A stretch of DNA of 64,000 nucleotides from Takakia lepidozioides (Eukaryota; Plantae; Bryophyta). Positions 9,355 through 45,308 of the stretch are shown in pieces. Where the stretch lies: assembly GCA_030704615.1 (NCBI GenBank), contig CM060734.1:16368001-16432000 (forward strand), given 5' to 3'. The position numbers and the translations under genes were made by a program. The notes beneath the pieces were generated by a model. It was not told where the DNA came from. It was given only the letters and a program-made list of their open reading frames with translations, and ran no database searches. Each line of letters begins with the position of its first letter. The first letter of the stretch is position 1.

Positions 9355-9573
9355 ATAAGTAAATAGTCAGGCTTGTCCAAACCTCAGATGGAAGAAGAGT
9401 GGACGCCTATCATTCTCTGCAAGGATCTCGTTCTTTCACTCTATCTAACTTTTATTGTTTTGTATCTTTTGTCTCCGGCAGGAAAAGGCCGAGGAAATAT
9501 TTAGGTGCGTTTAGATACATTTCTCACCTTTGAGCACACGTTGCTAACCTCATGGAGAATTTCGAGTGGCATT

Positions 9574-13790: not shown

Positions 13791-15741
13791 CCATGCTCCT
13801 TGGCGTAGTTGTACTCTACTGGAGATGGCTTCCTCTCAAACGCGCGTTGCTACACATGCCACAAATTAAAGTCAGTTCTTCGCGATGATGGATCCAGAAA
13901 GAAGACATAACAAAATCCATAGGGAAGTACGACTTACAAGATAAAACCCTTGGATCCGCCGGCACCCCACTTGTGTGTGGATTCGTGCTTGTCAAGGCAG
14001 ACTGTTGTTGCTTCGCGTGTCCAGTCAAATTTGGCCTTGTTTGTGGCATCGGTCTCTCCCGCAATGAGTGCATCCCACGATATCTATGCCCCCCCCCCCA
14101 ACAATTAGTGAATTACACACATACGTTGCATCGAATCCACCTCATTAATGCACATGCGACAAATGGAAGGTGACATGATTCAGGATTTGCCAACCTGTGT
14201 AATTCCATAAGTTGGTTTGGGTATGGCCCCCTTTTCCATTGCCCTCCGAATGATCTGTCTGGCACGGTACCTCCTATCCTTCAAGTTTCGCCCCACCATC
14301 TCCATCACCCTTGTGTCACTCCAACTGCCCGGAAACTGGCGGTCTAACTCACGGGCATACGCCCACTTCGCGCCAAAGTGCTGATCAGCCCACTCGATGT
14401 GCAAAGGGAACCACCTCAATGCGAGTTCGAAGGCTGGCTTCTTCATAGCCTCCCAGAACGCACCGCAGGGGTCACCATGGCGATTCACCTCCACCGGCGG
14501 CTCCACAATCTTTGCCAACTCCACGTCCTGTATTGCTAAGGACATGTTCTTCTTCCCACCCTCTCCCTTCTTTGTAGCCTCCTTCCCCTGCTCCTTTGTT
14601 ACCCCACTGCCCTCCCCCGCATGCACACTCACCCCTTCCTCTCCATGGGACTTCTTCTTCTTCTTCTTCTTTTCCTTCCCCTTCTCCACGACCATCTCCT
14701 TCCCCTTTCCCGCTACTTCCTCTCTCTCCTTCTCCCTCTCCCTTCTCTCTCTCCCCTCGGCAGCCCCTTCATTGATGGTAAAAGGGATCTCGAGAGATCG
14801 AGGCCTCTTCTTCTTACCTTTGGTGTTTGGGTCCTTCATGAACACCACGTGCTCTCCCTCATTGGCAACCCCACTGGACTGCACCAATGAGGCCAGCCAT
14901 GTTGCTGCCTCCTGAAGACAAATAACCCCTCCAAATTCAAAAAAAGAAACAAACAACAAAGAAAATCATGCATACAAAGGAAATGATAAATCATGGAACA
15001 AGGTGCGACAGTTGTACCTTTGCAAGCTTGGAATCTACTTCCAGTGGCGCTCCGGGAGGGGATAGAGCGGGCACATCCGGCAACGGGGACTCCTGCCATC
15101 CTGTAGTCCAGGCCCTTCTTTGCTGACCGCTCAGGCTCAGGGGGCAGTGTCGCTGATCGGCTAGGCTGCTCAGAACCGGCCCATACCTCCTCCTCTCCCC
15201 CCCCCAAATGCGTATCAGGGTAGAAGCCCTCACCCGGCTTGACTTCTTTGAGGCGCTTCGCTATCTTGGCCACTTCATTGGCCCTCCTCGTCTCCTCCTC
15301 TTTCATCGACAACAATGGTCTGGCAATGGAGGCTTTCAAAGGCCCTTGAACTTGACGTTGGGCCTTGGCAAGTGCAGCCTTTGCTGCGGAGGAAGGGGTT
15401 GCTATGGGGGTGACATCCAAAAGTTGCCCATACCGGGCCCCCGAACGGGTGATGTGCTTGCCAAGGTACATTTCACCTGTCTTGGTGGCCGGGGGTGTGC
15501 TCAACTGAGCATCCGGCTCAGCAACAACCTCTCGAATAGGAGAGCTGGTTGAGCCGGCCCCTGGCGCATCCAAGATGTGGACAAGAGGGGGGGTACTGGC
15601 CTCGGGGGGCATACGAGCCCTCCGGCTGCGGCTGTCGACGGGGCTGGTTAACCGTGAGTCACATGTGCCAGCAGAGCAAATGGATTGTCCGCCCTTTTCT
15701 TTGGGGCAGGGGACTTCTTCTCTTTCCCCATAAGCTAGCAC
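13784..15741 (-). pseudogene. CACTA ORF2 (TnpA/Ptta-like), middle exons
   Basis: GT-AG-bounded exons 15741-15018 and 14911-14195. The segment VEVNRHGDPCG..W..K..F..VG..LKDRRY resembles CACTA ORF2 proteins. It has at least one frameshift and one stop. Confidence 0.7.
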
Positions 15742-15857
15742 CTGTCATGCAAACCCACAAGTTGGCCTCATTAGGAAACAACCTCTACATTCCAGATCAA
15801 AAACAAAAAAAACCAAGCATGTCGGGGGCTGAGAGCAGCAAGTGCTCGGGGTCTCGA

Positions 15858-15975
15858 GAGGGGGCAACAAAGAGAAAAGAAAAAGGTGGGGGGGAGTGAG
15901 CACCACCACCAGCTGCTGAGCACCACGGGCTCAGTCACTCCCCCCCTCCTAATTTCTTTTTTTTTGGTTTCCTGA
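15858..15975. repeat. GA/CT-armed palindrome H1 (rearranged centre)
   Basis: GAGGGGGCAACAAAGA..AAGGTG(G)nAGTGAG ... CTCAGTCACT(C)n..TTTTGGTTTCC; homologous to 42044-42200. Confidence 0.75.
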
Positions 15976-17723
15976 TCTCTCCCTCTCTCCCTCTCCCTCT
16001 ATAAATCTTTGGATTTCATCTGGCCTTAACCTTTTGAGGTTATTTAGTTTTTCATCCCTGCCTTTTTCATCCAAATCTGGATGATTTTATTTTATTGGAT
16101 GATGAAACTTAATATACAGAAAGCTAGAGTTACCGTCTATTTTTTTCATCTAAACTGGATGATCTACATAAATAATGTTTACCTATTATAAAATCCAAGA
16201 GAATAATAAAACTACCATCATAAATGATGGCTGTTATTAAACCTAAACCTATACCATAACCCTAAAAGATACATTTCTATGGGATGTCATCCAGTGACAA
16301 AATGCCTATCTTGGTAAAATGTGATATTTCATCCATCCTGGATGAAAAATCGGGAAGTTTTGCCCTAAGCAGGCCGACACACTTCAAGCACTGAACTCGT
16401 GCTTCAGTGAACCTTGATGATGCGCCGTATAAACCTGCTCCCCTGCTGCTACATGGTACTCGTGATTGCTGGCTCTTGGGATGCGCAGTGGTGGTTAAAC
16501 AGATTCTTCTATGGCAGACGACAAAGCCGTGATTGCTCTGATCAGGAACTCATGGTTCTTTATTTTGCAGCGGCGCTTTTACTCCTTGTTGGGAAGTACT
16601 CTATCCCTATTTATCTACAGATTACTTGTTGCTCTCTCTTCGTGTATGAGCCACTCTCTAGCTGTGAACGCTTCTACTCTGATTGCGTTCTGTTGGAGAC
16701 AATCTGTTGGACGCCATGGCGCAGGGCATACCACAAACACTCAAGGTTTTTTGAGTTTACCATTGCTTGAATTGTGATATGTACTTGCTTTAGAATTCAA
16801 CACTGACATGGATAGCAACTGTGAAGACCTGCCACTTACCTGCTGCATCCTCACTAACACACATCGCTATGTGGTGGTTTTTGGGACGGGCACAGGTGAG
16901 GGTCTTCACTTGTCTTGATTTCTTGAAGCTTGCAGTTCCTGTTCTTGCAAGTGTGGATACTGCTGCTGCCTAAGCTGCTGATGCCATCTGCTGTTTCAAA
17001 CTGCCACCATGCCGCTTCAGACCTGCTCCAAGATTTCTCCAATGAGGATCTGCTTCTCTCCTTACCCCTGTTTACGGTTTTTTACAACCACATTTGCATG
17101 TGTAGGAGTTTAGCTATGAAGGATACAAGGATACAAAATAGCAGTTATTACTTTGACTGCCTTGATACTTGGCTCTGAAATGAGAACTCTTGGTATGACT
17201 CTGATGGATCAAAAGGATAGGCTTTGATAGATAACACACATTCTTCAAGGCCCTCATATCATTTTGGTTTCATGGCTTGATAACAAACAGGGGTTTCTGA
17301 GCTGCTCTTTCACCTTGGCAGAACTACTTTATGTGGCCTTAAAATACCATTCTAGGCCTATACCTGCTTAAGGGGGCTCTACACTGTTGTTTCTTCTTCC
17401 TTTTTAAGAATCTTGCTTATATCTTGGTTCTAAAACATCATCTTCAAACCAAACCTGCAATCTGGTTTTTGAAATGAGTTTAAAATGGATTCTTGAGATG
17501 ATGATGTGTACTATGGTGCTTTCATGATATGAATGACCTGGAATCCCACCCTCCCGCCCTGTTTTTTCAGAGACCCTGAAATGTAATTGGGTATTCAAAT
17601 GAGATTGTAAACATGAAAGAGAATGTTAGATGGTGCCCTGTAAAGGGCTGTTTTGTCTTTCAATGACAATGACCTTAGCGGTCTTGTCCATGTCTTGACA
17701 TGACATGTATATCTTCCCTCTCT
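15975..17723 (+). repeat. Non-coding module A, copy 1
   Basis: Direct repeat of 21952-23700 (offset 5978; only 2 substitutions noticed). A more diverged copy lies at ~42200-44030. Confidence 0.93.
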
Positions 17724-17835
17724 TTATTTGATCAGTGTACTTAGTGGTTTTTGTACACACCATCTACCCTTACCTTTCTCCTTTTCACCTTCTCATTTTG
17801 TTATATTGACAAATGTTCTTGGGGGGCTTTGACAG

Positions 17836-19066
17836 AGAGTCACCAAAGGAGGTCCTAGCTGGAATGAGGACCTCATAGCCCTGGGGTATCAGTCCCCACT
17901 ACCTCCTCCAATTCCTGCTGTGCAGGCAACCCTCGCACAAGTCACACCAAGTGACTTCCATGCTACATTGCAAAAGATGGATATTGAGGCCGTGGAAAAT
18001 TCAGGTGATGAAAACCCCGTGTTATTACTTGAAACCTTTTTGGAAAATTGGGTTGCACTTGGCATCATGGCAAATAAGAATGGCAGGTACCTGGAGAAGC
18101 TCCAGGAATTCAATACTAAAATTATTGAGGTACTGGAAGATGATGCCGAGGAGCTGATACAATGGGAAAAGAAGGGATCAGCCATTGAGGCAGCTCTTAG
18201 AATGGCGAACCCAGAAGATGACCAGACTGTCTCCACGCAGAAATCTACAAACACATCTGAAAAAGACTTCATCCCTTCTGTAAGTAATCACCCAATCCTT
18301 GGGCACATGATTTTACCGGATGAAGAAAAAGAGGCAGTGAGAGAATTCTGTGAACAAGTAGAAATCTCACAAGTGGAACAAGAAAGGGCAGCAGGTGCCA
18401 CTCCTGGAAATCTGCAATTTGTCCCTTGGTTGCCTCCCCGTGCAGTTGAATTAGAGGTTGCCAATAACGATCACATGATGTGGCACCCACATGCTAATAT
18501 CAATTTATTGGCACCCATTTCTATTGAAATGTGGGTCAAATGGGGCAACATAACTCCTGCTGAACGCAGTAGGTGTGCACAGGATGCTAAGGAGGGTTTT
18601 CAGAGAATAAAAAATGAACCTATTGCTGTGGCATGGCCACTAAGGACCTTCTACTACAAGCTCTGTGACAAAGGTGAGAACCTTACCCTGAGGACCAAAA
18701 ATGACTTGCCGACTGGTTCGGCCAGATCCAAAAATCACAAGAGTCAACTCTTCAATTGGCATCGTCCCTACATAAGATGTAACTGTGGACAAGGAGGGGC
18801 ACCCTCTTCTTGCATTGGGAGTGTTGCTTGGTTTGACCATATGGTATGGTATATGCTGAACAATCTGATTGTGTTCTTCCCTGATGATGCCTATCCTTCG
18901 GTGCAAACCAAGTATTACAGCTTTCTGGTATGGATCATGCGGGCTGCCAGATCTGCCGTTCTTGCACAAATTACCTTCCAGATGACCCGGGGCTTCATAA
19001 TGGAAGCAGCTTGTGAATTCTCAATTGACCCCCAAGCCAAGTTGCTTGGGAAGTTAGGAGAATCGG
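17836..19066 (+). CDS. PLE ORF1, N-terminal part (its C-terminus is 20680-20301 on the minus strand)
   Basis: The frame is open from a TTTGACAG acceptor-like site at 17835. It has a coiled-coil-like acidic region and a CNC-x8-C cluster, and joins in frame to an RG-rich tail after re-inversion. Confidence 0.75.
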
Positions 19067-20680
19067 ACTTTTTCAGGCAGGTTTAGTGTAAAGTCAGTGA
19101 TGGAATCAATAATCCAATAGATAGCAGTAGATACTTTGAAAAATTGCTCATAAGTATGCAGCCTTGTCTTGGCCCATTCTTTTACCAATGGTAGAAGATC
19201 CATGGTAGCCCTTGTAAGAAGGCTAGCAAGTTCACTGAAAACACATTTATGGGCATTGGTAATCCATCTGTATTTTTTCTTATGTAGCTTGTAGATTCCC
19301 ATAATGTAAGGTAATCTACAGGAGGGAGCAGATATCTCCGGAATCAGACTCTGTACTTCCACGGAAATGTTTCCTAGAGCAAGGTCAGGTGGCAGCCATA
19401 CCTCAGCTTGCTTGCATGGTGTAAAGTCTTTACCCATCAATCTGTGGAAGGCTTGAGTTCTTATGTGCTTCACACACATAAAACATACGTTGTTGTTAGC
19501 CTTGTCAAGACCAGAAAAATACAGGTGATTGAGAAGCCATGAAAGTTCATCTTTTGCCTCTTTTACAGTAAGAGGATTGCGCTCATGGTGAGTGAAGTCG
19601 TACCTTCCTCTGCCGGCTTTTTGTTTCAATCTATCCCAGCATGTGTTTTTTACCCATTGGCTGCAGGATGCTGCCCAAGATTCACATGGGTCTATATGTA
19701 AAATTTCACAGGTTCTATGGAAAGCCAGAGACACTTGTTCAACAACGTCTTTCAGCAAAGTACGTTTGAGAAGGATGTGATTCATACCTAGGCTGAATAG
19801 TTCTTTCAGCCTTGCGTGTCTAATAATATTTAGGTCCATGGTACGTACGTGTTGCGTAGGTGTAGAACCAGATAGATGGAATTCTGTTTTGTATCTGCAT
19901 CCTGAAAATCATGAAACCTCTTGGCACTGTCACATAGACAATCTGGTGAGTGAATCAGGTCTTGCATAAAGCAAAATCACGGAAAACAGCAGCAGGCTGA
20001 TAGTATTCAGAGCTGCTTTGTTTATGATATGTCCATCCAAAGACTATCTCATCGATGAGAATAGCCAAGTCATTTTGTCCAAATTCCAAAAAAGCTTCTT
20101 TTATCAAGTTCCTAGGGTTTATCCACTCCATAGCACGGTTTGGGTACAACATATGAATGAATCCCAAGGGAGCAGGTTTTGCTGCCTGTTTTATGAATTT
20201 CCTGCCATGGGCATGAGTTTCAATTTGTCTACAACCATCCTCAAGACCAAACAACGCATCTGCACATGCAAAGTAGAGGAACATACCAAAAATGAGATTT
20301 TTAAAGATCTGTCCATGATCCAAAATCTCGTTTGCGTATTGGGGAGAACTCGTCAGTGATACGACGAGTCTTGTATGACTCCTGGCTGGCGATGTTGATG
20401 GTGGTACTGGAATTAGCACCCGAACCCCCAAGTGATGACCGATTCGTTGCTCTTGAATTCTTAGAGGTGTTGGTAGAGTATTGCCCCCTGCCAGAGCGTC
20501 CTCCTCTTTGGTAGAGACCTCTTCCACGACCAGGGGTACCTCTGCCTCGAGTGGCATTGTTCTTGCCTTGTTGAGGAGGCGTCTGCCCCTCCATACGCTG
20601 CCGTTTGTAGCTGTTGAATTGTGGCCTGTGAAGGCTGTCTGAAAAAGACCCAGGTTTCACAAGTTTCTCAATGTATCTGG
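19067..20680 (-). other. Inverted 1614-bp segment of the PLE: ORF1 C-terminus and RT N-terminal half
   Basis: Re-inversion restores both frames: LGES|ARYIEKLVKP and LNLPEKV|PNIFVADITQCYENIP. Confidence 0.92.
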
Positions 20681-21665
20681 CCCCAACATCTTTGTTGCTG
20701 ACATTACACAATGCTATGAGAACATACCTTTGACAGGACAGGATAACTTAGGGGATGCCATTGAATACGTGGTGAAGATTGCATTCCAGCAACACCATCG
20801 GTCTCACCCCCGAGCACGTCATACTCTATGGATTCCAGCCAAAAACGGTACTTTCGGAAAAAGTAGATGGGGCACGTCTTCCCCAAAATCAGGTACCTGG
20901 ATTGAACTTTCTGAAGTCAAACTACTTATGCTCCACAAATGGCTTATGTCACACTGTTTTGTCGCCTTAGGGGACCGTGTATGGCAGCAGATTTCTGGAA
21001 TACCTATGGGTTTTTCATGCTCACCATTATGGTGCAACATGTACTTCCTTTCTTATGAAATCAAATTCATCTTAAGGCTTGCAGCTTTAGGACAATTCCA
21101 GCTTATGCCTATGTTTAAATCTGCCTTCAGATACATTGATGATATATGCTGGCTAAATGTGGGTGATGCAATGCTATTCCTGGACCCACGGGCAGACAGA
21201 AGCAGCAACAACCCTTGGTGGATCTACCCACTCAATGTAGTGGAGATCAAACCTGAGCTACTACGCACTAAAAACGATTCCCAATACGTGGGGTTGGAAG
21301 CTTGTTTCATGAATATCCAGATTACAGTCTCAAACTGTGACACAGGTGAGTTCCATTTCCAGAAATATGACAAGAGAAGACTACTTCCTTTCTCTTACAC
21401 TCAATATATCCAGTTCTTATCCAATAGGCCTGTGAATCAATCTTACAACATTGTGATTTCACAAGCTGTGCCTATTCTATACATTTCCAGCAATGCTGAT
21501 CTGGCTGGGAAGGAGTGTAGCATTCTGATTAACACTCTTGGGAGGAATGGTTTCAAGACCAGAAAACTTGCTCGTATCTTGACAAAATTCCTTGAACGTG
21601 GTTCATTCCCTGGCCTGCTCTTCCCTGTACAAGAGCTTATTGAGAAACTGAAAGGTACTTTCTAA
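20681..21665 (+). CDS. PLE reverse transcriptase, catalytic and thumb half
   Basis: ADITQCYENIP, GIPMGFSCSPLWCNMY, RYIDD, FMNIQI..YDKR. The frame ends without a C-terminal GIY-YIG domain. Confidence 0.9.
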
Positions 21666-21951
21666 AAACCTATACAGAGCTATGTTATACCATTGAACTC
21701 TACGTTCTTTTCTAAGTGATACTATACTAGTGTTGCTATGATACATTTTATGCCATCATTTCATTCTTGATCCGAGGAAGTGAGGATGTAGGATTCTACT
21801 CCTTTGGATAAATATTATCTGAGGATAGAACTACATGAAAGAGGGAAAACCTTATGAGAAGAGGTCTGGTATGCACTCCCTTACGGGGTGAGTGCATACC
21901 ACACTTACTCCGTAAGGTTCTGCCATGCCAGGGGATTGGCTGGTGGGTCCC

Positions 21952-23764
21952 TCTCTCTCCCTCTCTCCCTCTCCCTCTATAAATCTTTGGATTTCATCTG
22001 GCCTTAACCTTTTGAGGTTATTTAGTTTTTCATCCCTGCCTTTTTCATCCAAATCTGGATGATTTTATTTTATTGGATGATGAAACTTAATATACAGAAA
22101 GCTAGAGTTACCGTCTATTTTTTTCATCTAAACTGGATGATCTACATAAATAATGGTTACCTATTATAAAATCCAAGAGAATAATAAAACTACCATCATA
22201 AATGATGGCTGTTATTAAACCTAAACCTATACCATAACCCTAAAAGATACATTTCTATGGGATGTCATCCAGTGACAAAATGCCTATCTTGGTAAAATGT
22301 GATATTTCATCCATCCTGGATGAAAAATCGGGAAGTTTTGCCCTAAGCAGGCCGACACACTTCAAGCACTGAACTCGTGCTTCAGTGAACCTTGATGATG
22401 CGCCGTATAAACCTGCTCCCCTGCTGCTACATGGTACTCGTGATTGCTGGCTCTTGGGATGCGCAGTGGTGGTTAAACAGATTCTTCTATGGCAGACGAC
22501 AAAGCCGTGATTGCTCTGATCAGGAACTCATGGTTCTTTATTTTGCAGCGGCGCTTTTACTCCTTGTTGGGAAGTACTCTATCCCTATTTATCTACAGAT
22601 TACTTGTTGCTCTCTCTTCGTGTATGAGCCACTCTCTAGCTGTGAACGCTTCTACTCTGATTGCGTTCTGTTGGAGACAATCTGTTGGACGCCATGGCGC
22701 AGGGCATACCACAAACACTCAAGGTTTTTTGAGTTTACCATTGCTTGAATTGTGATATGTACTTGCTTTAGAATTCAACACTGACATGGATAGCAACTGT
22801 GAAGACCTGCCACTTACCTGCTGCATCCTCACTAACACACATCGCTATGTGGTGGTTTTTGGGACGGGCACAGGTGAGGGTCTTCACTTGTCTTGATTTC
22901 TTGAAGCTTGCAGTTCCTGTTCTTGCAAGTGTGGATACTGCTGCTGCCTAAGCTGCTGATGCCATCTGCTGTTTCAAACTGCCACCATGCCGCTTCAGAC
23001 CTGCTCCAAGATTTCTCCAATGAGGATCTGCTTCTCTCCTTACCCCTGTTTACGGTTTTTTACAACCACATTTGCATGTGTAGGAGTTTAGCTATGAAGG
23101 ATACAAGGATACAAAATAGCAGTTATTACTTTGACTGCCTTGATACTTGGCTCTGAAATGAGAACTCTTGGTATGACTCTGATGGATCAAAAGGATAGGC
23201 TTTGATAGATAACACACATTCTTCAAGGCCCTCATATCATTTTGGTTTCATGGCTTGATAACAAACAGGGGTTTCTGAGCTGCTCTTTCACCTTGGCAGA
23301 ACTACTTTATGTGGCCTTAAAATACCATTCTAGGCCTATACCTGCTTAAGGGGGCTCTACACTGTTGTTTCTTCTTCCTTTTTAAGAATCTTGCTTATAT
23401 CTTGGTTCTAAAACATCATCTTCAAACCAAACCTGCAATCTGGTTTTTGAAATGAGTTTAAAATGGATTCTTGAGATGATGATGTGTACTATGGTGCTTT
23501 CATGATATGAATGACCTAGAATCCCACCCTCCCGCCCTGTTTTTTCAGAGACCCTGAAATGTAATTGGGTATTCAAATGAGATTGTAAACATGAAAGAGA
23601 ATGTTAGATGGTGCCCTGTAAAGGGCTGTTTTGTCTTTCAATGACAATGACCTTAGCGGTCTTGTCCATGTCTTGACATGACATGTATATCTTCCCTCTT
23701 TTTTTTGCTGCTCACAAAAATAAACAAACCACAAGGGAGAGAGGGTGCAGAAAAAGTTAAAAAG
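21952..23764 (+). repeat. Non-coding module A, copy 2 (with tail)
   Basis: Near-identical to copy 1; its tail is shared with copy 3. Confidence 0.93.
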
Positions 23765-24475
23765 TTTGTACTCATAAGACGTTGTTTGTCGTAGCCTTGT
23801 GGCCATTGAGCCCGCACCCAGTTTGAGCGGAAACAAAAGGGACAGAACCTGCCTCTGTCAGGGGCTGACGTTGGTAGTAAGACTTACCTTCATATATAGA
23901 ATTAATCTGGGTTTTCCAGATATCCTCTAGAAATCCCTTCACACAAACTGCTGTGTGTGATTTGCCCAATAACTAGGCCTCAGGAGGGCCTGGGCTTTTG
24001 GCTCAGCCTTGAGACTTTCAAAGTTGGTAAACAGAGGTACAGGCACAATTCCCTTGATAGATTTGAAAGAGAGCGTCTCTTTGGTGAGAGAACCCCGGAC
24101 AGTGTATTAGAAAATGAGTACTGTCTTCAGATTGCCCACACAACGGGCAATTGCACTCTCCCTTTCCTCTTTGCTTCTGTCTGCTGTTCAAAGGTAGGCT
24201 TCCTGCTCTGAGTTTAAATTTCAGTCTAGTGCCGAGAGTGGGTAGACCCTTGAGGTCATCCAAGATGTCCTCCCCCATGTCACTGACTGGAAACAAGTTC
24301 AGGGAAGTTTTCTGCCTAACTTCATTTTCATCAGACAATCTCATGGCAACAGACATGGCTTTGGACACTACAGCCTCTAAGTCAGATTTATCAACCCATA
24401 TTGCAGATCCGTACTCCAAGGCAGGTCTAATAATGCGACAAATCATGGTTTTCTTAACCTCGGAGTTGACCCCTC
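23765..24475 (-). mobile_element. 5'-truncated, internally deleted RTE/RTEX-type LINE with a 19-bp TSD
   Basis: Motifs: IIRPALEYGSAIW, KLRAG..CPLC..EDSTHFLIHCP zinc finger, FLEDIWK. The TSD TGCAGAAAAAGTTAAAAAG is at 23746-23764 and 24476-24494. Confidence 0.85.
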
Positions 24476-27400
24476 TGCAGAAAAAGTTAAAAAGAGAGAG
24501 GGAAGATACTTTTTGTCATGTCAAGACAAGGACAGGACCCCCAGGGTCGTTGTCATGAAAGAATAATCAGACATATCAGCCACTTACCAGTGGCACCATC
24601 CATCAATCATCAAGCTTAGAAAATCCATAATTACATCCATGCACAATAATGTGTTCATGTCAGTATTATTCATAACCCAAAGAGTATGCCACTGATGCTG
24701 ATTGACCACCAGTCATGATCATGATACACATTCAGAGGTCTGGGTGGGATGGCGGGTACTTGGCCATATTTTGGCCTTGATGTATTGCGGGTCAAATGGT
24801 CATACAGATTTACTATCCGCAAGCTGTAATCCAAGCATACTTACTCAAACCCCATGGGTGTCATGGAGGGTTTTTTTTCCAAAACAAAAAGAACAAGAAG
24901 AACACTTGGACATCACAGATTTAAATATCTTGCCCTGCTAGTATTTGTTTAGACTGGTCTGCAGCACAGCTTGCCCCCACAGGGGAGGTGGATATGTCTG
25001 GTAAGTTTTCCAGAATACCCCTATACCTTTATTTCTTGCTACAGCTGAAAATCAAAGTTCGTGACCCAGCAAGGTAAAGATAAAGGACTGCATACACATC
25101 ATGTGACAGTATATAATACTATCAGTACATCCTATTCACATCATTCCACATTTGACCATGTCATTACACCATGTCCAGGGGGTATTTCCACTTGACCACC
25201 CTGGCTGCCTCAAAAACCAGTTACCAGTTATATATTGCTGTCATATTTCATTGTCAGCCGAATATCCACAGGCATAATCTTCACCATACCCTGCCCTAAG
25301 CATCTAGCTGACAAAGACATCCGGGTTGGAACATAACAGGAGCCAACATGGGTACCCGAATAGCTGCAACAAACAATTCCTTGCAGCCTCTCAAATTGTT
25401 TCCAACTACCATAAGGTAAGCAAAGCAAACTAGGGCCTGGAAAATAGATGTGTGTCTCTCACACAAGCCATCATAAACCCGGCTGTCACAACAAAGTAGA
25501 GGTCTTCCATTGGCTGGGCCGAAAATAGCCCATCGTAGAAAGCATTACACTTGTTCTTCAAAAATAAATGAAGGAAAGAGGTAGGAAGAAAAACCATAGA
25601 GTAGTTTAGTTTTTCAACATTTTAAGATACATCAGAATATTAAGTGGAAGCCCTCACCTGTGTCCGTCCCAAAAACAACCACAACGCATTGTGAGTTAGT
25701 GAGGATGCACGAGGTGAGTAGCAGGCTTCCACACTTGCTATCGAGTTCAAATACACTTCAATCTAAGCACAAAGAATGCCAAAGAAAGCAGGGAAGCAAA
25801 ACAAACAGAAAAAAGAACCTTTTTTACTGTTTGGGGGAGAGTCGTCATCTCTCCACAAGCCTAACCGTGCAGGGAGGACTCCGCCAGCACCACAGCACTG
25901 CTACCTTAACCAAAGCAAAGTCTTGCCAAGCACAAGAAAAAAGAGCTTGATCTCAAAAGGTAGGGTTTATAAAGGGAGGGAGAGAGACTTCCTTGTTCTT
26001 TTGAGCGGAAACAAAAGGGACAGAACCTGCCTCTGTCAGGGGCTGACGTTGGTAGTAAGACTTACCTTCATATATAGAATTAATCTGGGTTTTCCAGATA
26101 TCCTCTAGAAATCCCTTCACACAAACTGCTGTGTGTGATTTGCCCAATAACTAGGCCTCAGGAGGGCCTGGGCTTTTGGCTCAGCCTTGAGACTTTCAAA
26201 GTTGGTAAACAGAGGTACAGGCACAATTCCCTTGATAGATTTGAAAGAGAGCGTCTCTTTGGTGAGAGAACCCCGGACAGTGTATTAGAAAATGAGTACT
26301 GTCTTCAGATTGCCCACACAACGGGCAATTGCACTCTCCCTTTCCTCTTTGCTTCTGTCTGCTGTTCAAAGGTAGGCTTCCTGCTCTGAGTTTAAATTTC
26401 AGTCTAGTGCCGAGAGTGGGTAGACCCTTGAGGTCATCCAAGATGTCCTCCCCCATGTCACTGACTGGAAACAAGTTCAGGGAAGTTTTCTGCCTAACTT
26501 CATTTTCATCAGACAATCTCATGGCAACAGACATGGCTTTGGACACTACAGCCTCTAAGTCAGATTTATCAACCCATATTGCAGATCCGTACTCCAAGGC
26601 AGGTCTAATAATGCGACAAATCATGGTTTTCTTAACCTCGGAGTTGACCCCTCTGCAGAAAAAGTTAAAAAGAGAGAGGGAAGATACTTTTTGTCATGTC
26701 AAGACAAGGACAGGACCCCCAGGGTCGTTGTCATGAAAGAATAATCAGACATATCAGCCACTTACCAGTGGCACCATCCATCAATCATCAAGCTTAGAAA
26801 ATCCATAATTACATCCATGCACAATAATGTGTTCATGTCAGTATTATTCATAACCCAAAGAGTATGCCACTGATGCTGATTGACCACCAGTCATGATCAT
26901 GATACACATTCAGAGGTCTGGGTGGGATGGCGGGTACTTGGCCATATTTTGGCCTTGATGTATTGCGGGTCAAATGGTCATACAGATTTACTATCCGCAA
27001 GCTGTAATCCAAGCATACTTACTCAAACCCCATGGGTGTCATGGAGGGTTTTTTTTCCAAAACAAAAAGAACAAGAAGAACACTTGGACATCACAGATTT
27101 AAATATCTTGCCCTGCTAGTATTTGTTTAGACTGGTCTGCAGCACAGCTTGCCCCCACAGGGGAGGTGGATATGTCTGGTAAGTTTTCCAGAATACCCCT
27201 ATACCTTTATTTCTTGCTACAGCTGAAAATCAAAGTTCGTGACCCAGCAAGGTAAAGATAAAGGACTGCATACACATCATGTGACAGTATATAATACTAT
27301 CAGTACATCCTATTCACATCATTCCACATTTGACCATGTCATTACACCATGTCCAGGGGGTATTTCCACTTGACCACCCTGGCTGCCTCAAAAACCAGTT

Positions 27401-36400: not shown

Positions 36401-39400
36401 TGGCTGGGCCGAAAATAGCCCATCGTAGAAAGCATTACACTTGTTCTTCAAAAATAAATGAAGGAAAGAGGTAGGAAGAAAAACCATAGAGTAGTTTAGT
36501 TTTTCAACATTTTAAGATACATCAGAATATTAAGTGGAAGCCCTCACCTGTGTCCGTCCCAAAAACAACCACAACGCATTGTGAGTTAGTGAGGATGCAC
36601 GAGGTGAGTAGCAGGCTTCCACACTTGCTATCGAGTTCAAATACACTTCAATCTAAGCACAAAGAATGCCAAAGAAAGCAGGGAAGCAAAACAAACAGAA
36701 AAAAGAACCTTTTTTACTGTTTGGGGGAGAGTCGTCATCTCTCCACAAGCCTAACCGTGCAGGGAGGACTCCGCCAGCACCACAGCACTGCTACCTTAAC
36801 CAAAGCAAAGTCTTGCCAAGCACAAGAAAAAAGAGCTTGATCTCAAAAGGTAGGGTTTATAAAGGGAGGGAGAGAGACTTCCTTGTTCTTTTGAGCGGAA
36901 ACAAAAGGGACAGAACCTGCCTCTGTCAGGGGCTGACGTTGGTAGTAAGACTTACCTTCATATATAGAATTAATCTGGGTTTTCCAGATATCCTCTAGAA
37001 ATCCCTTCACACAAACTGCTGTGTGTGATTTGCCCAATAACTAGGCCTCAGGAGGGCCTGGGCTTTTGGCTCAGCCTTGAGACTTTCAAAGTTGGTAAAC
37101 AGAGGTACAGGCACAATTCCCTTGATAGATTTGAAAGAGAGCGTCTCTTTGGTGAGAGAACCCCGGACAGTGTATTAGAAAATGAGTACTGTCTTCAGAT
37201 TGCCCACACAACGGGCAATTGCACTCTCCCTTTCCTCTTTGCTTCTGTCTGCTGTTCAAAGGTAGGCTTCCTGCTCTGAGTTTAAATTTCAGTCTAGTGC
37301 CGAGAGTGGGTAGACCCTTGAGGTCATCCAAGATGTCCTCCCCCATGTCACTGACTGGAAACAAGTTCAGGGAAGTTTTCTGCCTAACTTCATTTTCATC
37401 AGACAATCTCATGGCAACAGACATGGCTTTGGACACTACAGCCTCTAAGTCAGATTTATCAACCCATATTGCAGATCCGTACTCCAAGGCAGGTCTAATA
37501 ATGCGACAAATCATGGTTTTCTTAACCTCGGAGTTGACCCCTCTGCAGAAAAAGTTAAAAAGAGAGAGGGAAGATACTTTTTGTCATGTCAAGACAAGGA
37601 CAGGACCCCCAGGGTCGTTGTCATGAAAGAATAATCAGACATATCAGCCACTTACCAGTGGCACCATCCATCAATCATCAAGCTTAGAAAATCCATAATT
37701 ACATCCATGCACAATAATGTGTTCATGTCAGTATTATTCATAACCCAAAGAGTATGCCACTGATGCTGATTGACCACCAGTCATGATCATGATACACATT
37801 CAGAGGTCTGGGTGGGATGGCGGGTACTTGGCCATATTTTGGCCTTGATGTATTGCGGGTCAAATGGTCATACAGATTTACTATCCGCAAGCTGTAATCC
37901 AAGCATACTTACTCAAACCCCATGGGTGTCATGGAGGGTTTTTTTTCCAAAACAAAAAGAACAAGAAGAACACTTGGACATCACAGATTTAAATATCTTG
38001 CCCTGCTAGTATTTGTTTAGACTGGTCTGCAGCACAGCTTGCCCCCACAGGGGAGGTGGATATGTCTGGTAAGTTTTCCAGAATACCCCTATACCTTTAT
38101 TTCTTGCTACAGCTGAAAATCAAAGTTCGTGACCCAGCAAGGTAAAGATAAAGGACTGCATACACATCATGTGACAGTATATAATACTATCAGTACATCC
38201 TATTCACATCATTCCACATTTGACCATGTCATTACACCATGTCCAGGGGGTATTTCCACTTGACCACCCTGGCTGCCTCAAAAACCAGTTACCAGTTATA
38301 TATTGCTGTCATATTTCATTGTCAGCCGAATATCCACAGGCATAATCTTCACCATACCCTGCCCTAAGCATCTAGCTGACAAAGACATCCGGGTTGGAAC
38401 ATAACAGGAGCCAACATGGGTACCCGAATAGCTGCAACAAACAATTCCTTGCAGCCTCTCAAATTGTTTCCAACTACCATAAGGTAAGCAAAGCAAACTA
38501 GGGCCTGGAAAATAGATGTGTGTCTCTCACACAAGCCATCATAAACCCGGCTGTCACAACAAAGTAGAGGTCTTCCATTGGCTGGGCCGAAAATAGCCCA
38601 TCGTAGAAAGCATTACACTTGTTCTTCAAAAATAAATGAAGGAAAGAGGTAGGAAGAAAAACCATAGAGTAGTTTAGTTTTTCAACATTTTAAGATACAT
38701 CAGAATATTAAGTGGAAGCCCTCACCTGTGTCCGTCCCAAAAACAACCACAACGCATTGTGAGTTAGTGAGGATGCATGAGGTGAGTAGCAGGCTTCCAC
38801 ACTTGCTATCGAGTTCAAATACACTTCAATCTAAGCACAAAGAATGCCAAAGAAAGCAGGGAAGCAAAACAAACAGAAAAAAGAACCTTTTTTACTGTTT
38901 GGGGGAGAGTCGTCATCTCTCCACAAGCCTAACCGTGCAGGGAGGACTCCGCCAGCACCACAGCACTGCTACCTTAACCAAAGCAAAGTCTTGCCAAGCA
39001 CAAGAAAAAAGAGCTTGATCTCAAAAGGTAGGGTTTATAAAGGGAGGGAGAGAGACTTCCTTGTTCTTTTGAGCGGAAACAAAAGGGACAGAACCTGCCT
39101 CTGTCAGGGGCTGACGTTGGTAGTAAGACTTACCTTCATATATAGAATTAATCTGGGTTTTCCAGATATCCTCTAGAAATCCCTTCACACAAACTGCTGT
39201 GTGTGATTTGCCCAATAACTAGGCCTCAGGAGGGCCTGGGCTTTTGGCTCAGCCTTGAGACTTTCAAAGTTGGTAAACAGAGGTACAGGCACAATTCCCT
39301 TGATAGATTTGAAAGAGAGCGTCTCTTTGGTGAGAGAACCCCGGACAGTGTATTAGAAAATGAGTACTGTCTTCAGATTGCCCACACAACGGGCAATTGC

Positions 39401-41243
39401 ACTCTCCCTTTCCTCTTTGCTTCTGTCTGCTGTTCAAAGGTAGGCTTCCTGCTCTGAGTTTAAATTTCAGTCTAGTGCCGAGAGTGGGTAGACCCTTGAG
39501 GTCATCCAAGATGTCCTCCCCCATGTCACTGACTGGAAACAAGTTCAGGGAAGTTTTCTGCCTAACTTCATTTTCATCAGACAATCTCATGGCAACAGAC
39601 ATGGCTTTGGACACTACAGCCTCTAAGTCAGATTTATCAACCCATATTGCAGATCCGTACTCCAAGGCAGGTCTAATAATGCGACAAATCATGGTTTTCT
39701 TAACCTCGGAGTTGACCCCTCTGCAGAAAAAGTTAAAAAGAGAGAGGGAAGATACTTTTTGTCATGTCAAGACAAGGACAGGACCCCCAGGGTCGTTGTC
39801 ATGAAAGAATAATCAGACATATCAGCCACTTACCAGTGGCACCATCCATCAATCATCAAGCTTAGAAAATCCATAATTACATCCATGCACAATAATGTGT
39901 TCATGTCAGTATTATTCATAACCCAAAGAGTATGCCACTGATGCTGATTGACCACCAGTCATGATCATGATACACATTCAGAGGTCTGGGTGGGATGGCG
40001 GGTACTTGGCCATATTTTGGCCTTGATGTATTGCGGGTCAAATGGTCATACAGATTTACTATCCGCAAGCTGTAATCCAAGCATACTTACTCAAACCCCA
40101 TGGGTGTCATGGAGGGTTTTTTTTCCAAAACAAAAAGAACAAGAAGAACACTTGGACATCACAGATTTAAATATCTTGCCCTGCTAGTATTTGTTTAGAC
40201 TGGTCTGCAGCACAGCTTGCCCCCACAGGGGAGGTGGATATGTCTGGTAAGTTTTCCAGAATACCCCTATACCTTTATTTCTTGCTACAGCTGAAAATCA
40301 AAGTTCGTGACCCAGCAAGGTAAAGATAAAGGACTGCATACACATCATGTGACAGTATATAATACTATCAGTACATCCTATTCACATCATTCCACATTTG
40401 ACCATGTCATTACACCATGTCCAGGGGGTATTTCCACTTGACCACCCTGGCTGCCTCAAAAACCAGTTACCAGTTATATATTGCTGTCATATTTCATTGT
40501 CAGCCGAATATCCACAGGCATAATCTTCACCATACCCTGCCCTAAGCATCTAGCTGACAAAGACATCCGGGTTGGAACATAACAGGAGCCAACATGGGTA
40601 CCCGAATAGCTGCAACAAACAATTCCTTGCAGCCTCTCAAATTGTTTCCAACTACCATAAGGTAAGCAAAGCAAACTAGGGCCTGGAAAATAGATGTGTG
40701 TCTCTCACACAAGCCATCATAAACCCGGCTGTCACAACAAAGTAGAGGTCTTCCATTGGCTGGGCCGAAAATAGCCCATCGTAGAAAGCATTACACTTGT
40801 TCTTCAAAATAAATGAAGGAAAGAGGTAGGAAGAAAAACCATAGAGTAGTTTAGTTTTTCAACATTTTAAGATACATCAGAATATTAAGTGGAAGCCCTC
40901 ACCTGTGTCCGTCCCAAAAACAACCACAACGCATTGTGAGTTAGTGAGGATGCATGAGGTGAGTAGCAGGCTTCCACACTTGCTATCGAGTTCAAATACA
41001 CTTCAATCTAAGCACAAAGAATGCCAAAGAAAGCAGGGAAGCAAAACAAACAGAAAAAAGAACCTTTTTTACTGTTTGGGGGAGAGTCGTCATCTCTCCA
41101 CAAGCCTAACCGTGCAGGGAGGACTCCGCCAGCACCACAGCACTGCTACCTTAACCAAAGCAAAGTCTTGCCAAGCACAAGAAAAAGAGCTTGATCTCAA
41201 AAGGTAGGGTTTATAAAGGGAGGGAGAGAGACTTCCTTGTTCT
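23822..41243. repeat. Tandem array of 8 x 2178 bp (LINE fragment plus inverted module A')
   Basis: The ORF track repeats with period 2178. There are exactly eight units with very few variants. Confidence 0.98.
24495..25990 (-). repeat. Module A', a diverged inverted homolog of module A (first of 8 copies)
   Basis: It shares three colinear blocks with A: the CT-tract/TATAAA/CCTTTTGAG start, an 89-nt central stem and a terminal double hairpin. The interiors look unrelated. Confidence 0.85.
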
Positions 41244-42043
41244 ACCAAGACGCCGCCATTCATCAAAGATCCAGAGGAGGGCTCCTAAAGAAACGTCATA
41301 ACATGCAGGTGGTACCTCCGCCATCACTGCCGTGGTTCCCTTGTGCAGCAAAAAAACAGACAACAGAGATAGTGAATCTTCCCTCATCTCTTAGCCACCG
41401 CCATCGCCTTAAAGAGCCCGCCTAGGCGGCGCTCACAGGAGCCATAAACACTCAAGGATTGGCAGCTCAAGGTATCTGCAGCACGAGCACCATCGCTCCT
41501 CCCAAGCCGCCATCGCGCGCGCTCTTGCAGCGCAAAAAGAAAGACATTAGGGTTGCGCAGGGTTTTCCCCTGTCTGGCCCGTCATTTATCCTGCTCAGGA
41601 TGAAAAACATCCGCCAGCCTATACGTCCGACGGACGTTGTCCGTTTCTCATTCGCGGAAGATGAAAGACATCGTGCGTTCATCCTGTCTTGAACTCGACA
41701 GATGCAGTCCGCTTTTCATCTAGGTTAGATGAAAAACATCGGGGGGTTTTTTTTTTTCTTTAAACTTTTTTATACTTGTCTTGCCCCGTATTTAGGTCTT
41801 GTCAGATGAAGTCATTTTTTCATCCAGGTTGGATTGAAAAAACTGACGGGAGTTTTGCAATCAGTATATTCCGGTTTGATGTTCGGATGAAGCAAAAAAC
41901 CTCACAGGTATTTAGAGAAGAAATGTTTCACTAGGAAAAAAATGTAATTTTGGATGAAAAACATCCAAAATTCCCTGTAACCTAATTTTTTCAATTTTTT
42001 CACAAATGGAAGTCGGGACAACAATTCCATAAACCTAGTTTCC

Positions 42044-42200
42044 AGAGGGAGAGAGTGGGAGAGAGAGAGAGGGCAACAAAGAAAAACAAAAAGGTGGGGG
42101 GGGGGGGGGGAGTGACTGAGCAGCTGCTACTCAGTCACTCCCACCCCCACCTTCCTCTTTTTCTTTTTGTTTCCTGATCTCTCCCTCTCACTCCCTCTAT
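42044..42200. repeat. Long palindrome H2
   Basis: Core GGGAGTGACTGAG-CAGCTGCTA-CTCAGTCACTCCC with imperfect purine/pyrimidine arms of ~70 bp. Confidence 0.9.
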
Positions 42201-44030
42201 CTGTCCCTCTCTCTCCCTCTCTCCCTCTCCCTCTATAACTCTTGGGATTTCATCTGGCCTTAACCTTTTGAGGTTATTTAGTTTTTCATCCCAGCCTTTT
42301 TCATCCAAATCTGGATGAATTTATTATAGGGTGATGAAACTTAATGTACAAAAAGCTGGATTTACCATCTATTTCTTTCATCTAAACTAGATAATCTACA
42401 TAAATAATGGTTACCTATTATAAAATCCAAGAGAATAATAAAACTACCATCATAAATGATGGCAGTTATTAAACCTAAGCCTATACCATAACCCTAAAAG
42501 ATACATTTCTATGGGATGTCGTCCATTGACAAAGTGCCTCTCTTGGTAAAATGTGATTTTTCATCCACCCTGGATGAAAAATCGGGAAGTTTTGCCCTGA
42601 GCAGGCCGACACACTTCACAGCACTGAACTCGTGCTTCAGTGAACTTTGATGATGCGCCGTATAAACCTGCTCCCCTGCTGCTACATGGTACTCGTGATG
42701 GCTGGCTCTTGGGATGCGCATTGGTGGTTAAACAGATTCTTCTCTGGCAGACGACAAAGCGGTGATCGCTTTGATCAGAAACTCATGGTTCTTTATTTTG
42801 CAGCGACGCTTTTACTCCTTGTTGGGAAGTACTCTATCCCTATTTATCTACAGATTACATGTTGCTCTCTCTTTGTGTATGAGCCATTCTCTATCTGTGA
42901 ACGCTTCTACTCTGATTGCGTTCTGTTGGAGACGATCTGTTGGACGCCATGGCGCAGGGCATACCACAAACACTCAAGGTTTTTTGAGTTTACCATTGCT
43001 TGAATTGTGATCTGTACTTGCTTTAGAATTCAACACTGACATGGATAGCAACTGTGAAGACCTGCCATTTACATGCTGCATCCTCACTAACACACATCGC
43101 TATGTGGTGGTTTTTGGGACGGGCACAGGTGGGGGTCTTCACTTGTCTTGATTTCTTGAAAGCTTGGAGCTCCTGTTCTTGCAAATGTGGATTCTGATGT
43201 TGCCTATGCTGCTGATGCCATCTACTGTTTCAAACTGCCACCATGCCGCTTCAGACCTGCTCCAAGATGGCTCCAATGAGGATATGCTTCTTTCCTTACC
43301 CCTGTTTCTGGTTTTTTACAACCACATTTGCATGTGTAGGAGTTAAGCTATGAAGGATACAAGGATACAAAATAGCAGTTATTACTCTGACTACCTTGAT
43401 ACTTGGCTCTGAAATGAAACTTCTTGGTATGACTCTGATGGATCAAAAGGATAGGCTTTGATAGATAACACACATTCTTCAAGGCCCTCATATCATTTTG
43501 GTTTCATGGCTTGATAACAAACAGGGGTTTCTGAGCTGCTCTTTCACCTTGGCAAAACTATTTTATGAGGCCTTAAAATACCAGGCCTATACCTGCTTAA
43601 GGGGGCTCTACCCTTTTGTTTCTTCTTCCTTTTTAAGAATCTTGCTTATATCTTGGTTCTAAAACATCATCTTCAAACCAAACTTGCAATCTGGTTTTTG
43701 AAATAAGTTTGAAATGAATTTTTGAGATGATGATGCATACTATGGTGCTTTCATGATATGAATGACCTGAAATCCCACCCTCCCGCCCTGTTTTTTCAGA
43801 GACCCTGAAATGTAATGGGGTATTCAAATGAGATTGTCAACATGAAAGGGAATGTTAGATGGTGCCCTGTAAAGGGCTGTTTTGTCTTTCAATGACAATG
43901 ACCTTAGCGGTCTTGTCCATGTCTTGACATGACATGTATATCTTCCCTCTCTTTTGTGCTGCTCACAAAAAAAAAAAAACCCACAGAGGGAAAGAGGGGG
44001 TAGAAAAAGTTAATAAGAGAGAGGGAGAGA
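42200..44030 (+). repeat. Non-coding module A, copy 3 (older, diverged)
   Basis: Colinear with copies 1 and 2, with scattered substitutions and small indels. Confidence 0.92.
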
Positions 44031-44097
44031 GAGGGAGAGAGAAGGAGAGGGAGAGAGGGGGCAACAATGAAAAAAAATGGGTTGGGGGGGGGAGGGA

Positions 44098-44720
44098 GGT
44101 CAGATGGTGGGGTCAGCTGCAGCATATGTCCAACACCAGATATCCTAAGTTAATCGACTCTATATCTTGGAAACAGGACCGCCCACCGACCTATCAAACA
44201 GGCTAAGTCCTGGCAGAAGACAGTAGAAGAGATTCTCAAGGATCTGGACCTGGAACCACAAGTCTTCACCCTGCTGGATAAATCTGACTTAGAGGCTATA
44301 ATGTCCAATCATGTCTGTTGCCATGAGATTGTCTGATGAAAATGAAGTTAGGCAAAAAACTTCCCTGAACTTGTTTCCAGTCAGTGACATGGGGGAGGAC
44401 ATCTTGGATGACCTCAAGGGTCTACCCACTCTCGGCACTAGACTGAAATTTAAACTCAGAGCAGGAAGCCTACCTTTGAACAGCAGACAGAAGCAGAGAG
44501 GAAAGGGAGAGTGCAATTGCCCGTTGTGTGGGCAATCTGAAGACAGTACTCATTTTCTAATACACTGTCCGGGGTTCTCTCACCAAAGAGACGCTCTCTT
44601 TCAAATCTATCAAGGGAATTGTGCATGTACCTCTGTTTACCAACTTTGAAAGTCTCAAGGCTGAGCCAAAAGCCCAGGCCCTCCTGAGGCCTAGTTATTG
44701 GGCAAATCACACACAACAGA
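44098..44720 (+). mobile_element. RTE-type LINE 3' fragment sitting between the two arms of palindrome H3
   Basis: VRWWGQLQHMSNTRYPK..SWQKTVEEILKDL..CPLC zinc finger. The left flank resembles the H left arm and 44729-44820 is the H right arm. Confidence 0.82.
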
Positions 44721-44858
44721 TTGAGACACAGTAGCTGCTGCTCAGTCACTCCCCCCCCCCCACCTTCTTTTCTTTTCTTTGTTGCCCCCTGATGTCTCCC
44801 TCTCACTCCCTCTCTTTGTCCCTCTCTCTCCCTCTCTTCTGTGCTGCTCTCTTTTAAG

Positions 44859-45300
44859 CTCCCGACGAGATAAATTCAAGGTCAGATGGTGGGTTCAGCT
44901 GCAACATATGTCCAACACCAGATATCCTAAGTTAATCGACTCTATATCTTGGAAACAGGACCGCCCTGTCAAACAGGGTAAGCCCTAGGAGAAGAGAGTA
45001 GAAGAGATTCTTAAGGATCTGAATCTGGACCCGCAAGTCTTGACCTTGCTGGATAAACCTGACTTAGAGAGTGTAGTGTCCAAAGCCATGTCTATTACCA
45101 GAAAATTGTCCGATGAAAATGAAGTTAGGAAGAAAACTTCCCTGAACCTGTTTCCAGTCTGTGACATGGGGGAGGACATCATGGATGCGCTCAAGGGTCT
45201 ATCCCACTCTTGGCACCAGACCTAAATTTAAACTCAGGGTAGGAAGACTACCTTTGAACAGTAAACAGAAGCAGAGAGGAAAGGGAGAGTGCAATTTCCC
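44859..45300 (+). mobile_element. Third, more diverged fragment of the same LINE family
   Basis: RRDKFKVRWWVQLQHMSNTRYPK..., truncated within the zinc finger. Confidence 0.82.
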
Positions 45301-45308
45301 TGACGTAC

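Follow-up and report, generated by a model that had tools for sequence, protein, structure and literature searches.

How does a retroelement that encodes no endonuclease come to be inserted away from chromosome ends? For the endonuclease-less 'PLE-X' group of Penelope-like elements (PLEs), described from Chara and Selaginella and with BLASTP matches in mosses, non-telomeric insertion is an open question, and the way it proceeds without a nuclease is stated as unknown (PMC8557442). The question is raised again by a 29.6-kb block (15742-45308) within a 64,000-nt stretch of the Takakia lepidozioides genome (hereafter the window), in which a PLE reverse transcriptase (RT) gene is accompanied by repeated non-coding modules (A and A'), palindromes (H1-H3) and pieces of a long interspersed nuclear element (LINE). 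An initial annotation had read the block as a single chain lying in an intron of a CACTA element and built by the PLE RT. Our analyses favour a different account, to which we give a probability of about 0.7, namely that retroelement insertions and subsequent DNA rearrangements have piled up in the block around one endonuclease-less PLE family with two open reading frames (ORFs). What is seen would then be mostly published PLE behaviour plus three ordinary later events and not a new system, with a modest novelty in the form of a CT-tract-anchored, ribozyme-less and nuclease-less plant PLE lineage.

Self-comparison of the window, a single stretch of one genome, reproduced the module order of the block and the CCCTCT/AGAGGG tracts at its junctions, both of which are real. 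The CT/GA tracts at 17712, 21948, 24489, 42204 and 44819 coincide exactly with module ends, and each A and A' module is bounded at both ends by a CT-rich tract, so the initial annotation was right that modules start and end on such tracts. The features of the PLE and of its A modules are as follows.

15976-17730, plus strand: A1, read as the upstream pseudo-long terminal repeat (pseudo-LTR); opens with (CCCTCT)n followed by TATAAA and closes with a 14-nt CT tail
17731-21953, plus strand: PLE body, comprising the 5' untranslated region (UTR), ORF1, RT, then a conserved block before the CT tract
17920-19062, plus strand: N-terminal portion of ORF1 (381 codons), which stops at the left breakpoint of the inversion
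19063-20684, minus strand: inverted segment with the C-terminal part of ORF1 (RG-rich) and the N-terminal half of the RT (CxC region, DKA motif, RT motifs 1-2)
20685-21665, plus strand: C-terminal half of the RT, with motif A (FVAD), a long A-B spacer, motif B (GIPMGFSCSP), motif C (YIDD) and thumb
21948-21978, plus strand: internal (CCCTCT)n tract, the boundary between coding body and 3' module; relatives have a tract at the equivalent place
21954-23707, plus strand: A2, read as the PLE's own 3' module
22789-22889, plus strand: stem-loop of the 3' module, with other copies at 16811-16911, 43044-43144 and, in A', 25642-25742 (minus strand)
23708-23745, plus strand: 38-nt 3' extension after A2, a candidate PLE 'tail'
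42204-44013, plus strand: A3, read as a solo 3' module (95% identical to A1/A2), plus a tail like that after A2

A Penelope-like reverse transcriptase with no endonuclease detected

The RT-coding body is located between A1 and A2. A protein homologue search with the 311-codon ORF at 20730-21665 returned 1702 relatives, the best of them 50-53% identical, and the relatives that carry a name come from Selaginella, Chara and the moss Ceratodon. Since a sequence search of the PDB with one relative, P0001 (52% identical to the RT half in the window), and with the family profile gave no meaningful match, we compared folds. The first 14 PDB matches to an AlphaFold model of P0001 (pLDDT, the predicted local distance difference test score, 88) were all telomerases or telomerase reverse transcriptases (TERTs), which ranked ahead of Prp8 and a group II intron RT; this likeness to telomerase is a fold-level result obtained on a relative and not a phylogenetic placement.

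PLEs of the Naiad and Chlamys groups have a CxC motif, a DKA or DK motif and a long spacer that separates RT motif A from motif B; pseudo-LTRs and inverted 5'-truncated copies are also described for them, as is a bias towards microsatellites, and hammerhead ribozymes are usually lacking (PMC8557442, Craig et al. 2021). In the window, the minus-strand ORF at 19054-19839 contains the DKG-type motif GLDKANNN, and D188, K189 and A190 are invariant or near-invariant in a 13-sequence family alignment. The two cysteines of the CxC motif (C44 and C46) are invariant in that alignment, and the corresponding region of the window copy is disrupted by two 1-bp deletions. Motifs FVAD and GIPMG are separated by a spacer of ~100 residues.

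Pfam searches with the ORFs of the PLE body, A and A' gave no match, and in relatives the RVT_1 match is weak. Neither GIY-YIG nor any other endonuclease domain was found by Pfam in any ORF of the window element or its relatives, lenient thresholds included, and on this ground we class the element as endonuclease-less, like Athena, Coprina and PLE-X. The initial annotation's comparison with endonuclease-less PLEs agrees with the Pfam result, with the motifs and with the fold of P0001. No hammerhead ribozyme was detected by Rfam at E<=1 in 15000-46000 or in the relatives L001, L002 and L021, and the only Rfam matches in the block and relatives are generic miRNA-like ones on the H2 palindrome (42044-42234).

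The PLE unit consists of a 5' UTR, ORF1 (~540 codons) and a TERT-like RT (~690 amino acids), after which come the conserved block, the internal CT tract and, last, the non-coding 3' module of 1.75 kb. As part of the account to which the probability of about 0.7 is attached, we take the element to be a two-ORF, endonuclease-less, TERT-like PLE of the Naiad/Chlamys type and 'PLE-X'-like, a grouping made by motifs.

The A modules as the 3' end of the element

A1 (15976-17730) and A2 (21954-23707) are 99.8% identical and lie 5978 bp apart, start to start; A3, aligned over 42210-43954, is 95% identical to both, and A is without any domain-bearing ORF. In the initial annotation A was a passenger whose RNA was copied in trans. 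Relatives point instead to A as a part of the PLE itself. In the metagenome contig L002, whose ORF1 and RT are ~50% identical to those of the window, the RT stop is followed by the same conserved block as in the window, then by a (CT)n tract, and an A-type stem-loop lies ~430 nt past the tract. Two Ceratodon elements, a and b, have both the pre-tract block and the tract in common with the window, and in L001 a CT-tailed 3' end is joined directly to a 5' start with the TACTTAGT motif, as at window position 17743. Taken together, the order of RT, block, tract and stem-loop in L002, the Ceratodon block and tract and the L001 junction indicate that A is native to the PLE as its own non-coding 3' module and that A1 and A2 are pseudo-LTRs, the usual partial tandem of PLEs; the relatives L023 and L024 likewise have pseudo-LTRs. 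For annotation, this means that A should be merged into the PLE consensus as its 3' module and not kept as a separate family.

A3 appears to be a solo 3' module with its 5' end at the internal CT tract. It has a counterpart in L021, a relative of L002 from another metagenome, in which homology begins exactly at the (CT)n tract, the sequence upstream is unrelated and no RT is present. Solo A modules are found here and in another species, in both cases starting at the tract.

The stem-loop of the 3' module (~90 nt) contains the invariant blocks GATAGCAA, CTAAC and CAGGTGAGG. Its pairing is kept by compensatory changes among A, A' and L002, with 7 of 29 pairs changed on both sides, and it covaries across families whose RTs are only ~50% identical, being found in L002 (4631-4745), L021 and L025 (1217-1306). 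An 18-nt stretch beside the stem-loop is identical in the window and L002. Metagenome scans with a 25-nt A/A' stem-loop pattern gave 0 matches, and scans with an 18-nt stem-loop pattern gave 15 loci, only L021 among them being a true relative. A group of P0015-type TARA contigs (L003-L007), whose architecture differs, was set aside. The second conserved block, directly upstream of the internal CT tract (window 21832-21947), is partly self-complementary (CTGGTATGCA ... ATACCAGG-like) and has counterparts in L002 (4049-4160) and L023 (5700-5850 and 11320-11470); by Rfam it is not a hammerhead.

A 38-nt 3' extension is common to A2 and A3 and absent after A1. By analogy with the Penelope/Poseidon 'tail', an optional extension of 30-40 bp present in only a fraction of copies (PMC11167929, Frangieh et al. 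2024), it is a candidate PLE 'tail'. The equal 3' flanks of A2 and A3 imply that the two are related by duplication of a composite and not by separate priming events. In A1-A3, A', L001 and Ceratodon the CT tail at the 3' end belongs to the element, and in Ceratodon the two repeat copies have tails of different length; such an element-borne tail fits priming on GA-rich DNA, by analogy with Athena and Coprina, telomere-primed endonuclease-less PLEs that we treat together with Terminons (Gladyshev and Arkhipova 2007, summarised in PMC8557442).

TATAAA directly follows the opening CT tract in A (15996-16003) and in every array unit of A' (25970-25975, minus strand, in the first). It may act as a promoter within the pseudo-LTR, of the kind reported for Penelope and Chlamys-3_cRei, and it is not conserved in L002 or L021.

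A comparable arrangement is found in Ceratodon purpureus (CM026427.1, 323181-344413; L023), where the modules follow one another as B, PLE-a, (TC)n, A, PLE-b, (TC)n, A, B. Identity is 99.9% between the two A copies and again between the two B copies, and only ~72%, in DNA sequence, between the coding bodies of PLE-a and PLE-b. This order is most simply explained by insertion of one PLE, pseudo-LTRs included, into the internal CT tract of a second. The pair adjoins ordinary host genes (Phi_1 and KH_PNO1). In L025 a (CTT)n tract comes after the RT, and the stem-loop motifs lie in a module of their own; in L024 the pseudo-LTRs measure 1287 bp and a long tract is lacking. From these relatives the internal CT tract appears to be a recurrent, non-universal boundary and landing site, and this is the part of the initial idea that survives.

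An independent LINE insertion and a probably young tandem array

Downstream of A2 the block continues with a LINE piece and an array.

23746-23764: LINE target-site duplication, copy 1, 19 bp, TGCAGAAAAAGTTAAAAAG
23765-24475, minus strand: 3' end of a 5'-truncated, L1-like LINE, with the ORF2 C-terminal zinc knuckle and the 3' UTR
24476-24494: LINE target-site duplication, copy 2, which recurs in every array unit
23822-41243, minus strand: tandem array, 8.0 copies of 2178 bp; each contains the greater part of the LINE piece together with A'
24495-25987, minus strand: A' of the first unit, with CT tract and TATAAA start, stem-loop, GACATGAC motif and CT tail

The LINE piece, which gives a weak zf-RVT match in Pfam, is flanked by a perfect 19-bp duplication, and in the 3' flank of A3, near 43997-44013, the LINE target sequence is uninterrupted and so constitutes a paralogous empty site. 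On these two grounds the LINE, which had been taken as a module of the chain, is shown to be an independent and ordinary 5'-truncated L1-like insertion at the tail-to-tail junction of A2 and A'. The ~140 contig ends at 23767 in run X1, which are preceded by variable GA-rich sequence, mark where the 3' end of this very abundant LINE family really lies. Most genomic copies of this family (3' end 23765-23767) end in a variable CT-rich simple repeat (GA-rich on the plus strand) and not in poly(A).

The LINE had been placed once in the chain. In fact it sits in all eight units: on the minus strand, each unit reads A' (CT tract, TATAAA, stem-loop, GACATGAC, CT tail) and then the 5'-truncated end of LINE ORF2 with the 3' UTR, the LINE sequence forming a 449-bp copy that is inverted relative to two further LINE-type pieces at 44097-44745 and 44879-45300. 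Those two pieces have the same 5' start base, and their first 180 bp are absent from the array's LINE copy; they may represent a LINE-tailed non-autonomous subfamily. The 2178-bp unit is present exactly 8 times, with only 4 variable positions across the units, one of which is shared by units 7 and 8. Neighbouring units meet 57 bp before the 3' end of the LINE and 12 bp upstream of the CT tract of A'. Because the junctions fall inside the LINE 3' UTR and not at element termini, the array, which had been attributed to chain-building by the RT, most probably arose very recently by tandem duplication, at the DNA level, of the LINE together with A', after the LINE had inserted.

A' resembles A in two patches of ~81% identity, at the 3' end and in the stem-loop, and has similar termini. 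The relation between A' and A that had been proposed holds for these parts and not over the whole length, and we regard A' as a diverged non-coding relative of A. Given the terminal CT tracts common to both and the covarying stem-loop, A' is a plausible non-autonomous partner of the PLE. Among contigs of public runs, up to ~30 distinct ones cover a variant position in A or A', some of them uniformly unlike the window, and 1-3 cover the PLE body; A, A' and LINE positions all have many more distinct contigs than the PLE body, and word depth points the same way. A and A' would thus be dispersed families that outnumber the coding body, the outcome expected of 5' truncation and/or trans-mobilisation.

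With these results in hand it seems unlikely that the whole 29.6-kb chain was built as the initial annotation proposed, in the manner of a non-telomeric Terminon, with the PLE RT priming or template-jumping at (AGAGGG)n ends and copying A, A', H and LINE RNAs in trans. The CT/GA tracts at all A and A' ends, the TERT-like RT without a nuclease, the comparable multi-module chain in Ceratodon and the presence of A/A' words in many more contigs than the PLE body would all be expected of such a process. It does not predict that A should be contiguous with the RT in distant relatives, and so part of the element, nor the clean target duplication and paralogous empty site of the LINE, nor an array junction inside the LINE 3' UTR and away from any element end; and the equal 3' flank of A2 and A3 leads to composite duplication and not to independent priming.

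An inverted, inactivated copy of the element

Intact relatives of ~690 amino acids map onto the window in two parts, residues 1-335 on the minus strand (from 20131 down to 19063) and residues 336-659 on the plus strand (20685-21653). The PLE body had been annotated as plus-strand throughout; this holds for the body and not for the segment 19063-20684, which the mapping across the breakpoints reveals to be inverted. The inversion measures 1,622 bp, its breakpoints are exact to the base at 19062/19063 and 20684/20685, and they are without inverted repeats. When the segment is re-inverted in silico, ORF1 is fused in frame to 537 codons and the RT frame becomes 608 codons. The RT region also carries two 1-bp deletions, near 19972 and 19886, where the RT frame slips twice.

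Contigs from two independent studies (X1 and X5) join 19065 to 20685 on opposite strands, which is the un-inverted form, and have one extra base after 19886 and one after 19972 relative to the window. As these contigs show the un-inverted joint and the extra bases exactly at the frame slips, the window copy appears to be dead, inactivated by the inversion and the two deletions, and intact-looking copies appear to be present elsewhere in the organism.

An assembly artefact, in which the eight near-identical 2178-bp units and/or the 1,622-bp inversion would come from a mis-assembled multi-copy family, is a less probable alternative again. Tandem and inverted PLE structures are known to disturb assemblies (PMC8557442), the array units are 99.9-100% identical, and among the joints listed public contigs show the un-inverted form only. 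The initial annotation, moreover, claimed another 'cryptic' inversion, of 11.1 kb, at 2644-13790, which would make two exact inversions in 64 kb. The array nevertheless has 4 private differences, one of them shared by the neighbouring units 7 and 8, as expected of a real young array, and its flanks are clean and unique; the inversion breakpoints are base-exact and in frame on both sides, with no misleading repeats there. The view that A-PLE-A is an LTR retrotransposon or DIRS-like, or that A and H are non-autonomous DNA transposons or elements like large retrotransposon derivatives (LARDs) or terminal-repeat retrotransposons in miniature (TRIMs), can be dismissed as highly improbable, for apart from the two 1755-bp direct repeats of 99.8% identity around the coding body the element has neither a protease nor an integrase, RNase H or tyrosine recombinase, its TERT-like RT matches RVT_1 only marginally, the repeats, in direct orientation, have CT tracts at both ends in place of TG..CA ends and no target duplication, and the 3' repeat has an extra tail.

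Leader palindromes and the flanks of the block

The remaining features of the block lie at its two ends.

15855-16000: H1, a head-to-head pair of a ~60-80-nt leader, R; the right arm continues into the CT tract that opens A1
41244-42043, minus strand: A'', a weakly A-like 5' region and extended left arm of H2
42044-42234: H2, a near-perfect R'/R palindrome centred on 42125, with GA and CT tracts on either side
44016-44840: H3, with R' arm at 44016-44097, R arm at 44733-44840 and a LINE-type piece between them
44097-44745, plus strand: LINE-type piece 1, containing the ORF2 C-terminal zinc knuckle
44879-45300, plus strand: LINE-type piece 2, 87% identical to piece 1, with the same 5' start position and ending at 45300

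The six arms of the three palindromes are all homologous, being copies of the 60-80-nt leader R, with a CT tract closing every arm. In each of H1-H3 two copies of R face each other head to head on the 5' side of A-type modules, the arms of H1 and H2 lying 5' of A, an arrangement that matches, by analogy, the 'inverted 5' copy' known for PLEs. R, which in every case appears in such a pair, was not found in the PLE body of the window. A'' is 68% identical to A over 79 nt and shares short GGATGAAAAA hairpin motifs with it.

The frame of a CACTA intron is not supported. GT and AG dinucleotides are present on the minus strand at 45308 and 15742, the donor and acceptor on which the intron had been based, and the 'donor' lies 8 bp from the truncated LINE end at 45300. 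We searched the putative exon flanks ORF by ORF, each flank on its own; the minus-strand flank ORFs are of low complexity and gave no homologue and no domain, and for the ORF claimed as the downstream 'exon' (14836-15741, minus strand) protein-atlas and homologue searches returned nothing. A strong match to DUF4218, which is CACTA-associated, lies in an ORF within 49033-52894 and a weak, sub-threshold SET-like match (E 0.04) at 47468-48025, both on the plus strand. The recognisable CACTA-type ORFs are thus on the strand opposite to the proposed intron, and no coding exon is supported at either splice site.

The block is flanked by Ty3/gypsy elements and the CACTA-type region. Two Ty3/gypsy copies in inverted orientation (3745-7776 and 54971-59033; 87% identity), with protease-RT and gag, RT and integrase ORFs, bracket the whole region, and further gypsy RT/RNase H ORFs lie at 12324-13388.

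A probable nest of insertions on CT/GA tracts

The locus and its relatives offer a testable answer to the question of non-telomeric insertion, in which three features have a part: the CT tail that the element encodes, its internal CT tract and the conserved stem-loop of its 3' module. The evidence comes from the window, from metagenome contigs and from the nested Ceratodon pair. We propose that the CU-rich 3' tail of the RNA would anneal to GA-rich DNA 3' ends at CT/GA microsatellites, allowing reverse transcription to be primed without a nuclease. The internal CT tract could give the microhomology for early 5' joining, which would release solo A modules, and could also serve as a landing site for further copies, which would produce chains. 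A', which keeps the terminal tracts and the stem-loop, was probably copied in trans. Later the LINE inserted at the tail-to-tail junction of A2 and A', after which the 2178-bp segment of LINE plus A' would have been amplified to 8 copies by duplication of DNA. A few ordinary events can in this way mimic a designed 'system', here the formation of a pseudo-LTR and of a solo 3' module, the arrival of a LINE, tandem duplication and inversion.

Several observations weigh against this account. No empty target site was seen for any PLE or A insertion, and priming on microsatellites is inferred. Not every member of the family has such a tract, a long internal one being absent from L001, L024 and L026. 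The PLE's own sequence does not account for the R leader and the H palindromes, and published PLE-X families carry hammerhead ribozymes, of which none was found here. The inversion could be an assembly error, as among the contigs listed none confirms the window's inverted junctions, and RT-mediated template switching keeps a small residual chance of having made the array. The copy numbers are contig word depths and not copy counts, and the map is of one genome window.

Going further, we put forward only tentatively, as a possibility that we hold to be well short of even, that the element is an interstitial counterpart of Athena and Coprina, that is, a conserved land-plant PLE lineage lacking nuclease and ribozyme that would spread by means of a CU-rich tail on CT/GA microsatellites, with the internal tract as a module boundary that frees a self-propagating non-coding 3' module and as a landing pad for chains.

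Comparison with known systems

Like Athena and Coprina, the window element has no nuclease and occurs in chains of copies, some of them truncated, and its CT tail may correspond to their short 3' repeat, which is complementary to a G-rich DNA repeat. It differs in that its repeat is not the plant telomere unit, its locus is interstitial, amid Ty3/gypsy and CACTA-like sequence, it is without a hammerhead next to the repeat, and its RT groups with Naiad/Chlamys instead, an assignment based on motifs only. The optional ~38-nt extension after A2 and A3, and not after A1, resembles the tail of Penelope/Poseidon (PMC11167929), whereas the window element has no endonuclease able to recognise such a tail.

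Non-autonomous head-to-tail derivatives are a published PLE trait (PMC8557442). A' and solo A resemble the MRC1-type derivatives of Chlamys (PMC8557442) and the animal non-LTR retrozymes that derive from PLE pseudo-LTRs (bioRxiv 10.64898/2026.07.22.740005) in that they are protein-free, carry a 3' end and a structured internal element also found in the autonomous element, and are present in many more contig variants than the coding body. Unlike those, they are without a ribozyme, and the x8 array includes a LINE piece and has its junctions off the element ends, so that it is probably a DNA duplication and not a head-to-tail retro-insertion.

The closest likeness by homology is to the PLE-X elements of the Chlamys group, whose host taxa supply the closest named homologues of the window RT. 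Both have the CxC and DK(A) motifs and no GIY-YIG, and both have pseudo-LTRs, 5'-truncated and inverted 5' copies and an association with simple repeats; the ~100-residue motif A-B spacer of the window element may correspond to the long spacer of PLE-X. Naiads and most Chlamys elements typically have no canonical hammerheads, but the published PLE-X families do (PMC8557442), and none was found in the window element. ORF1 of the window element is separate and ~540 codons long, whereas in PLE-X it is an intron-separated N-terminal extension. The tracts here are CT/CCCTCT, in contrast to the (CA)n, (C)n or 28S rDNA target of PLE-X, and in the window element it is the internal CT tract that sets off a modular 3' region.

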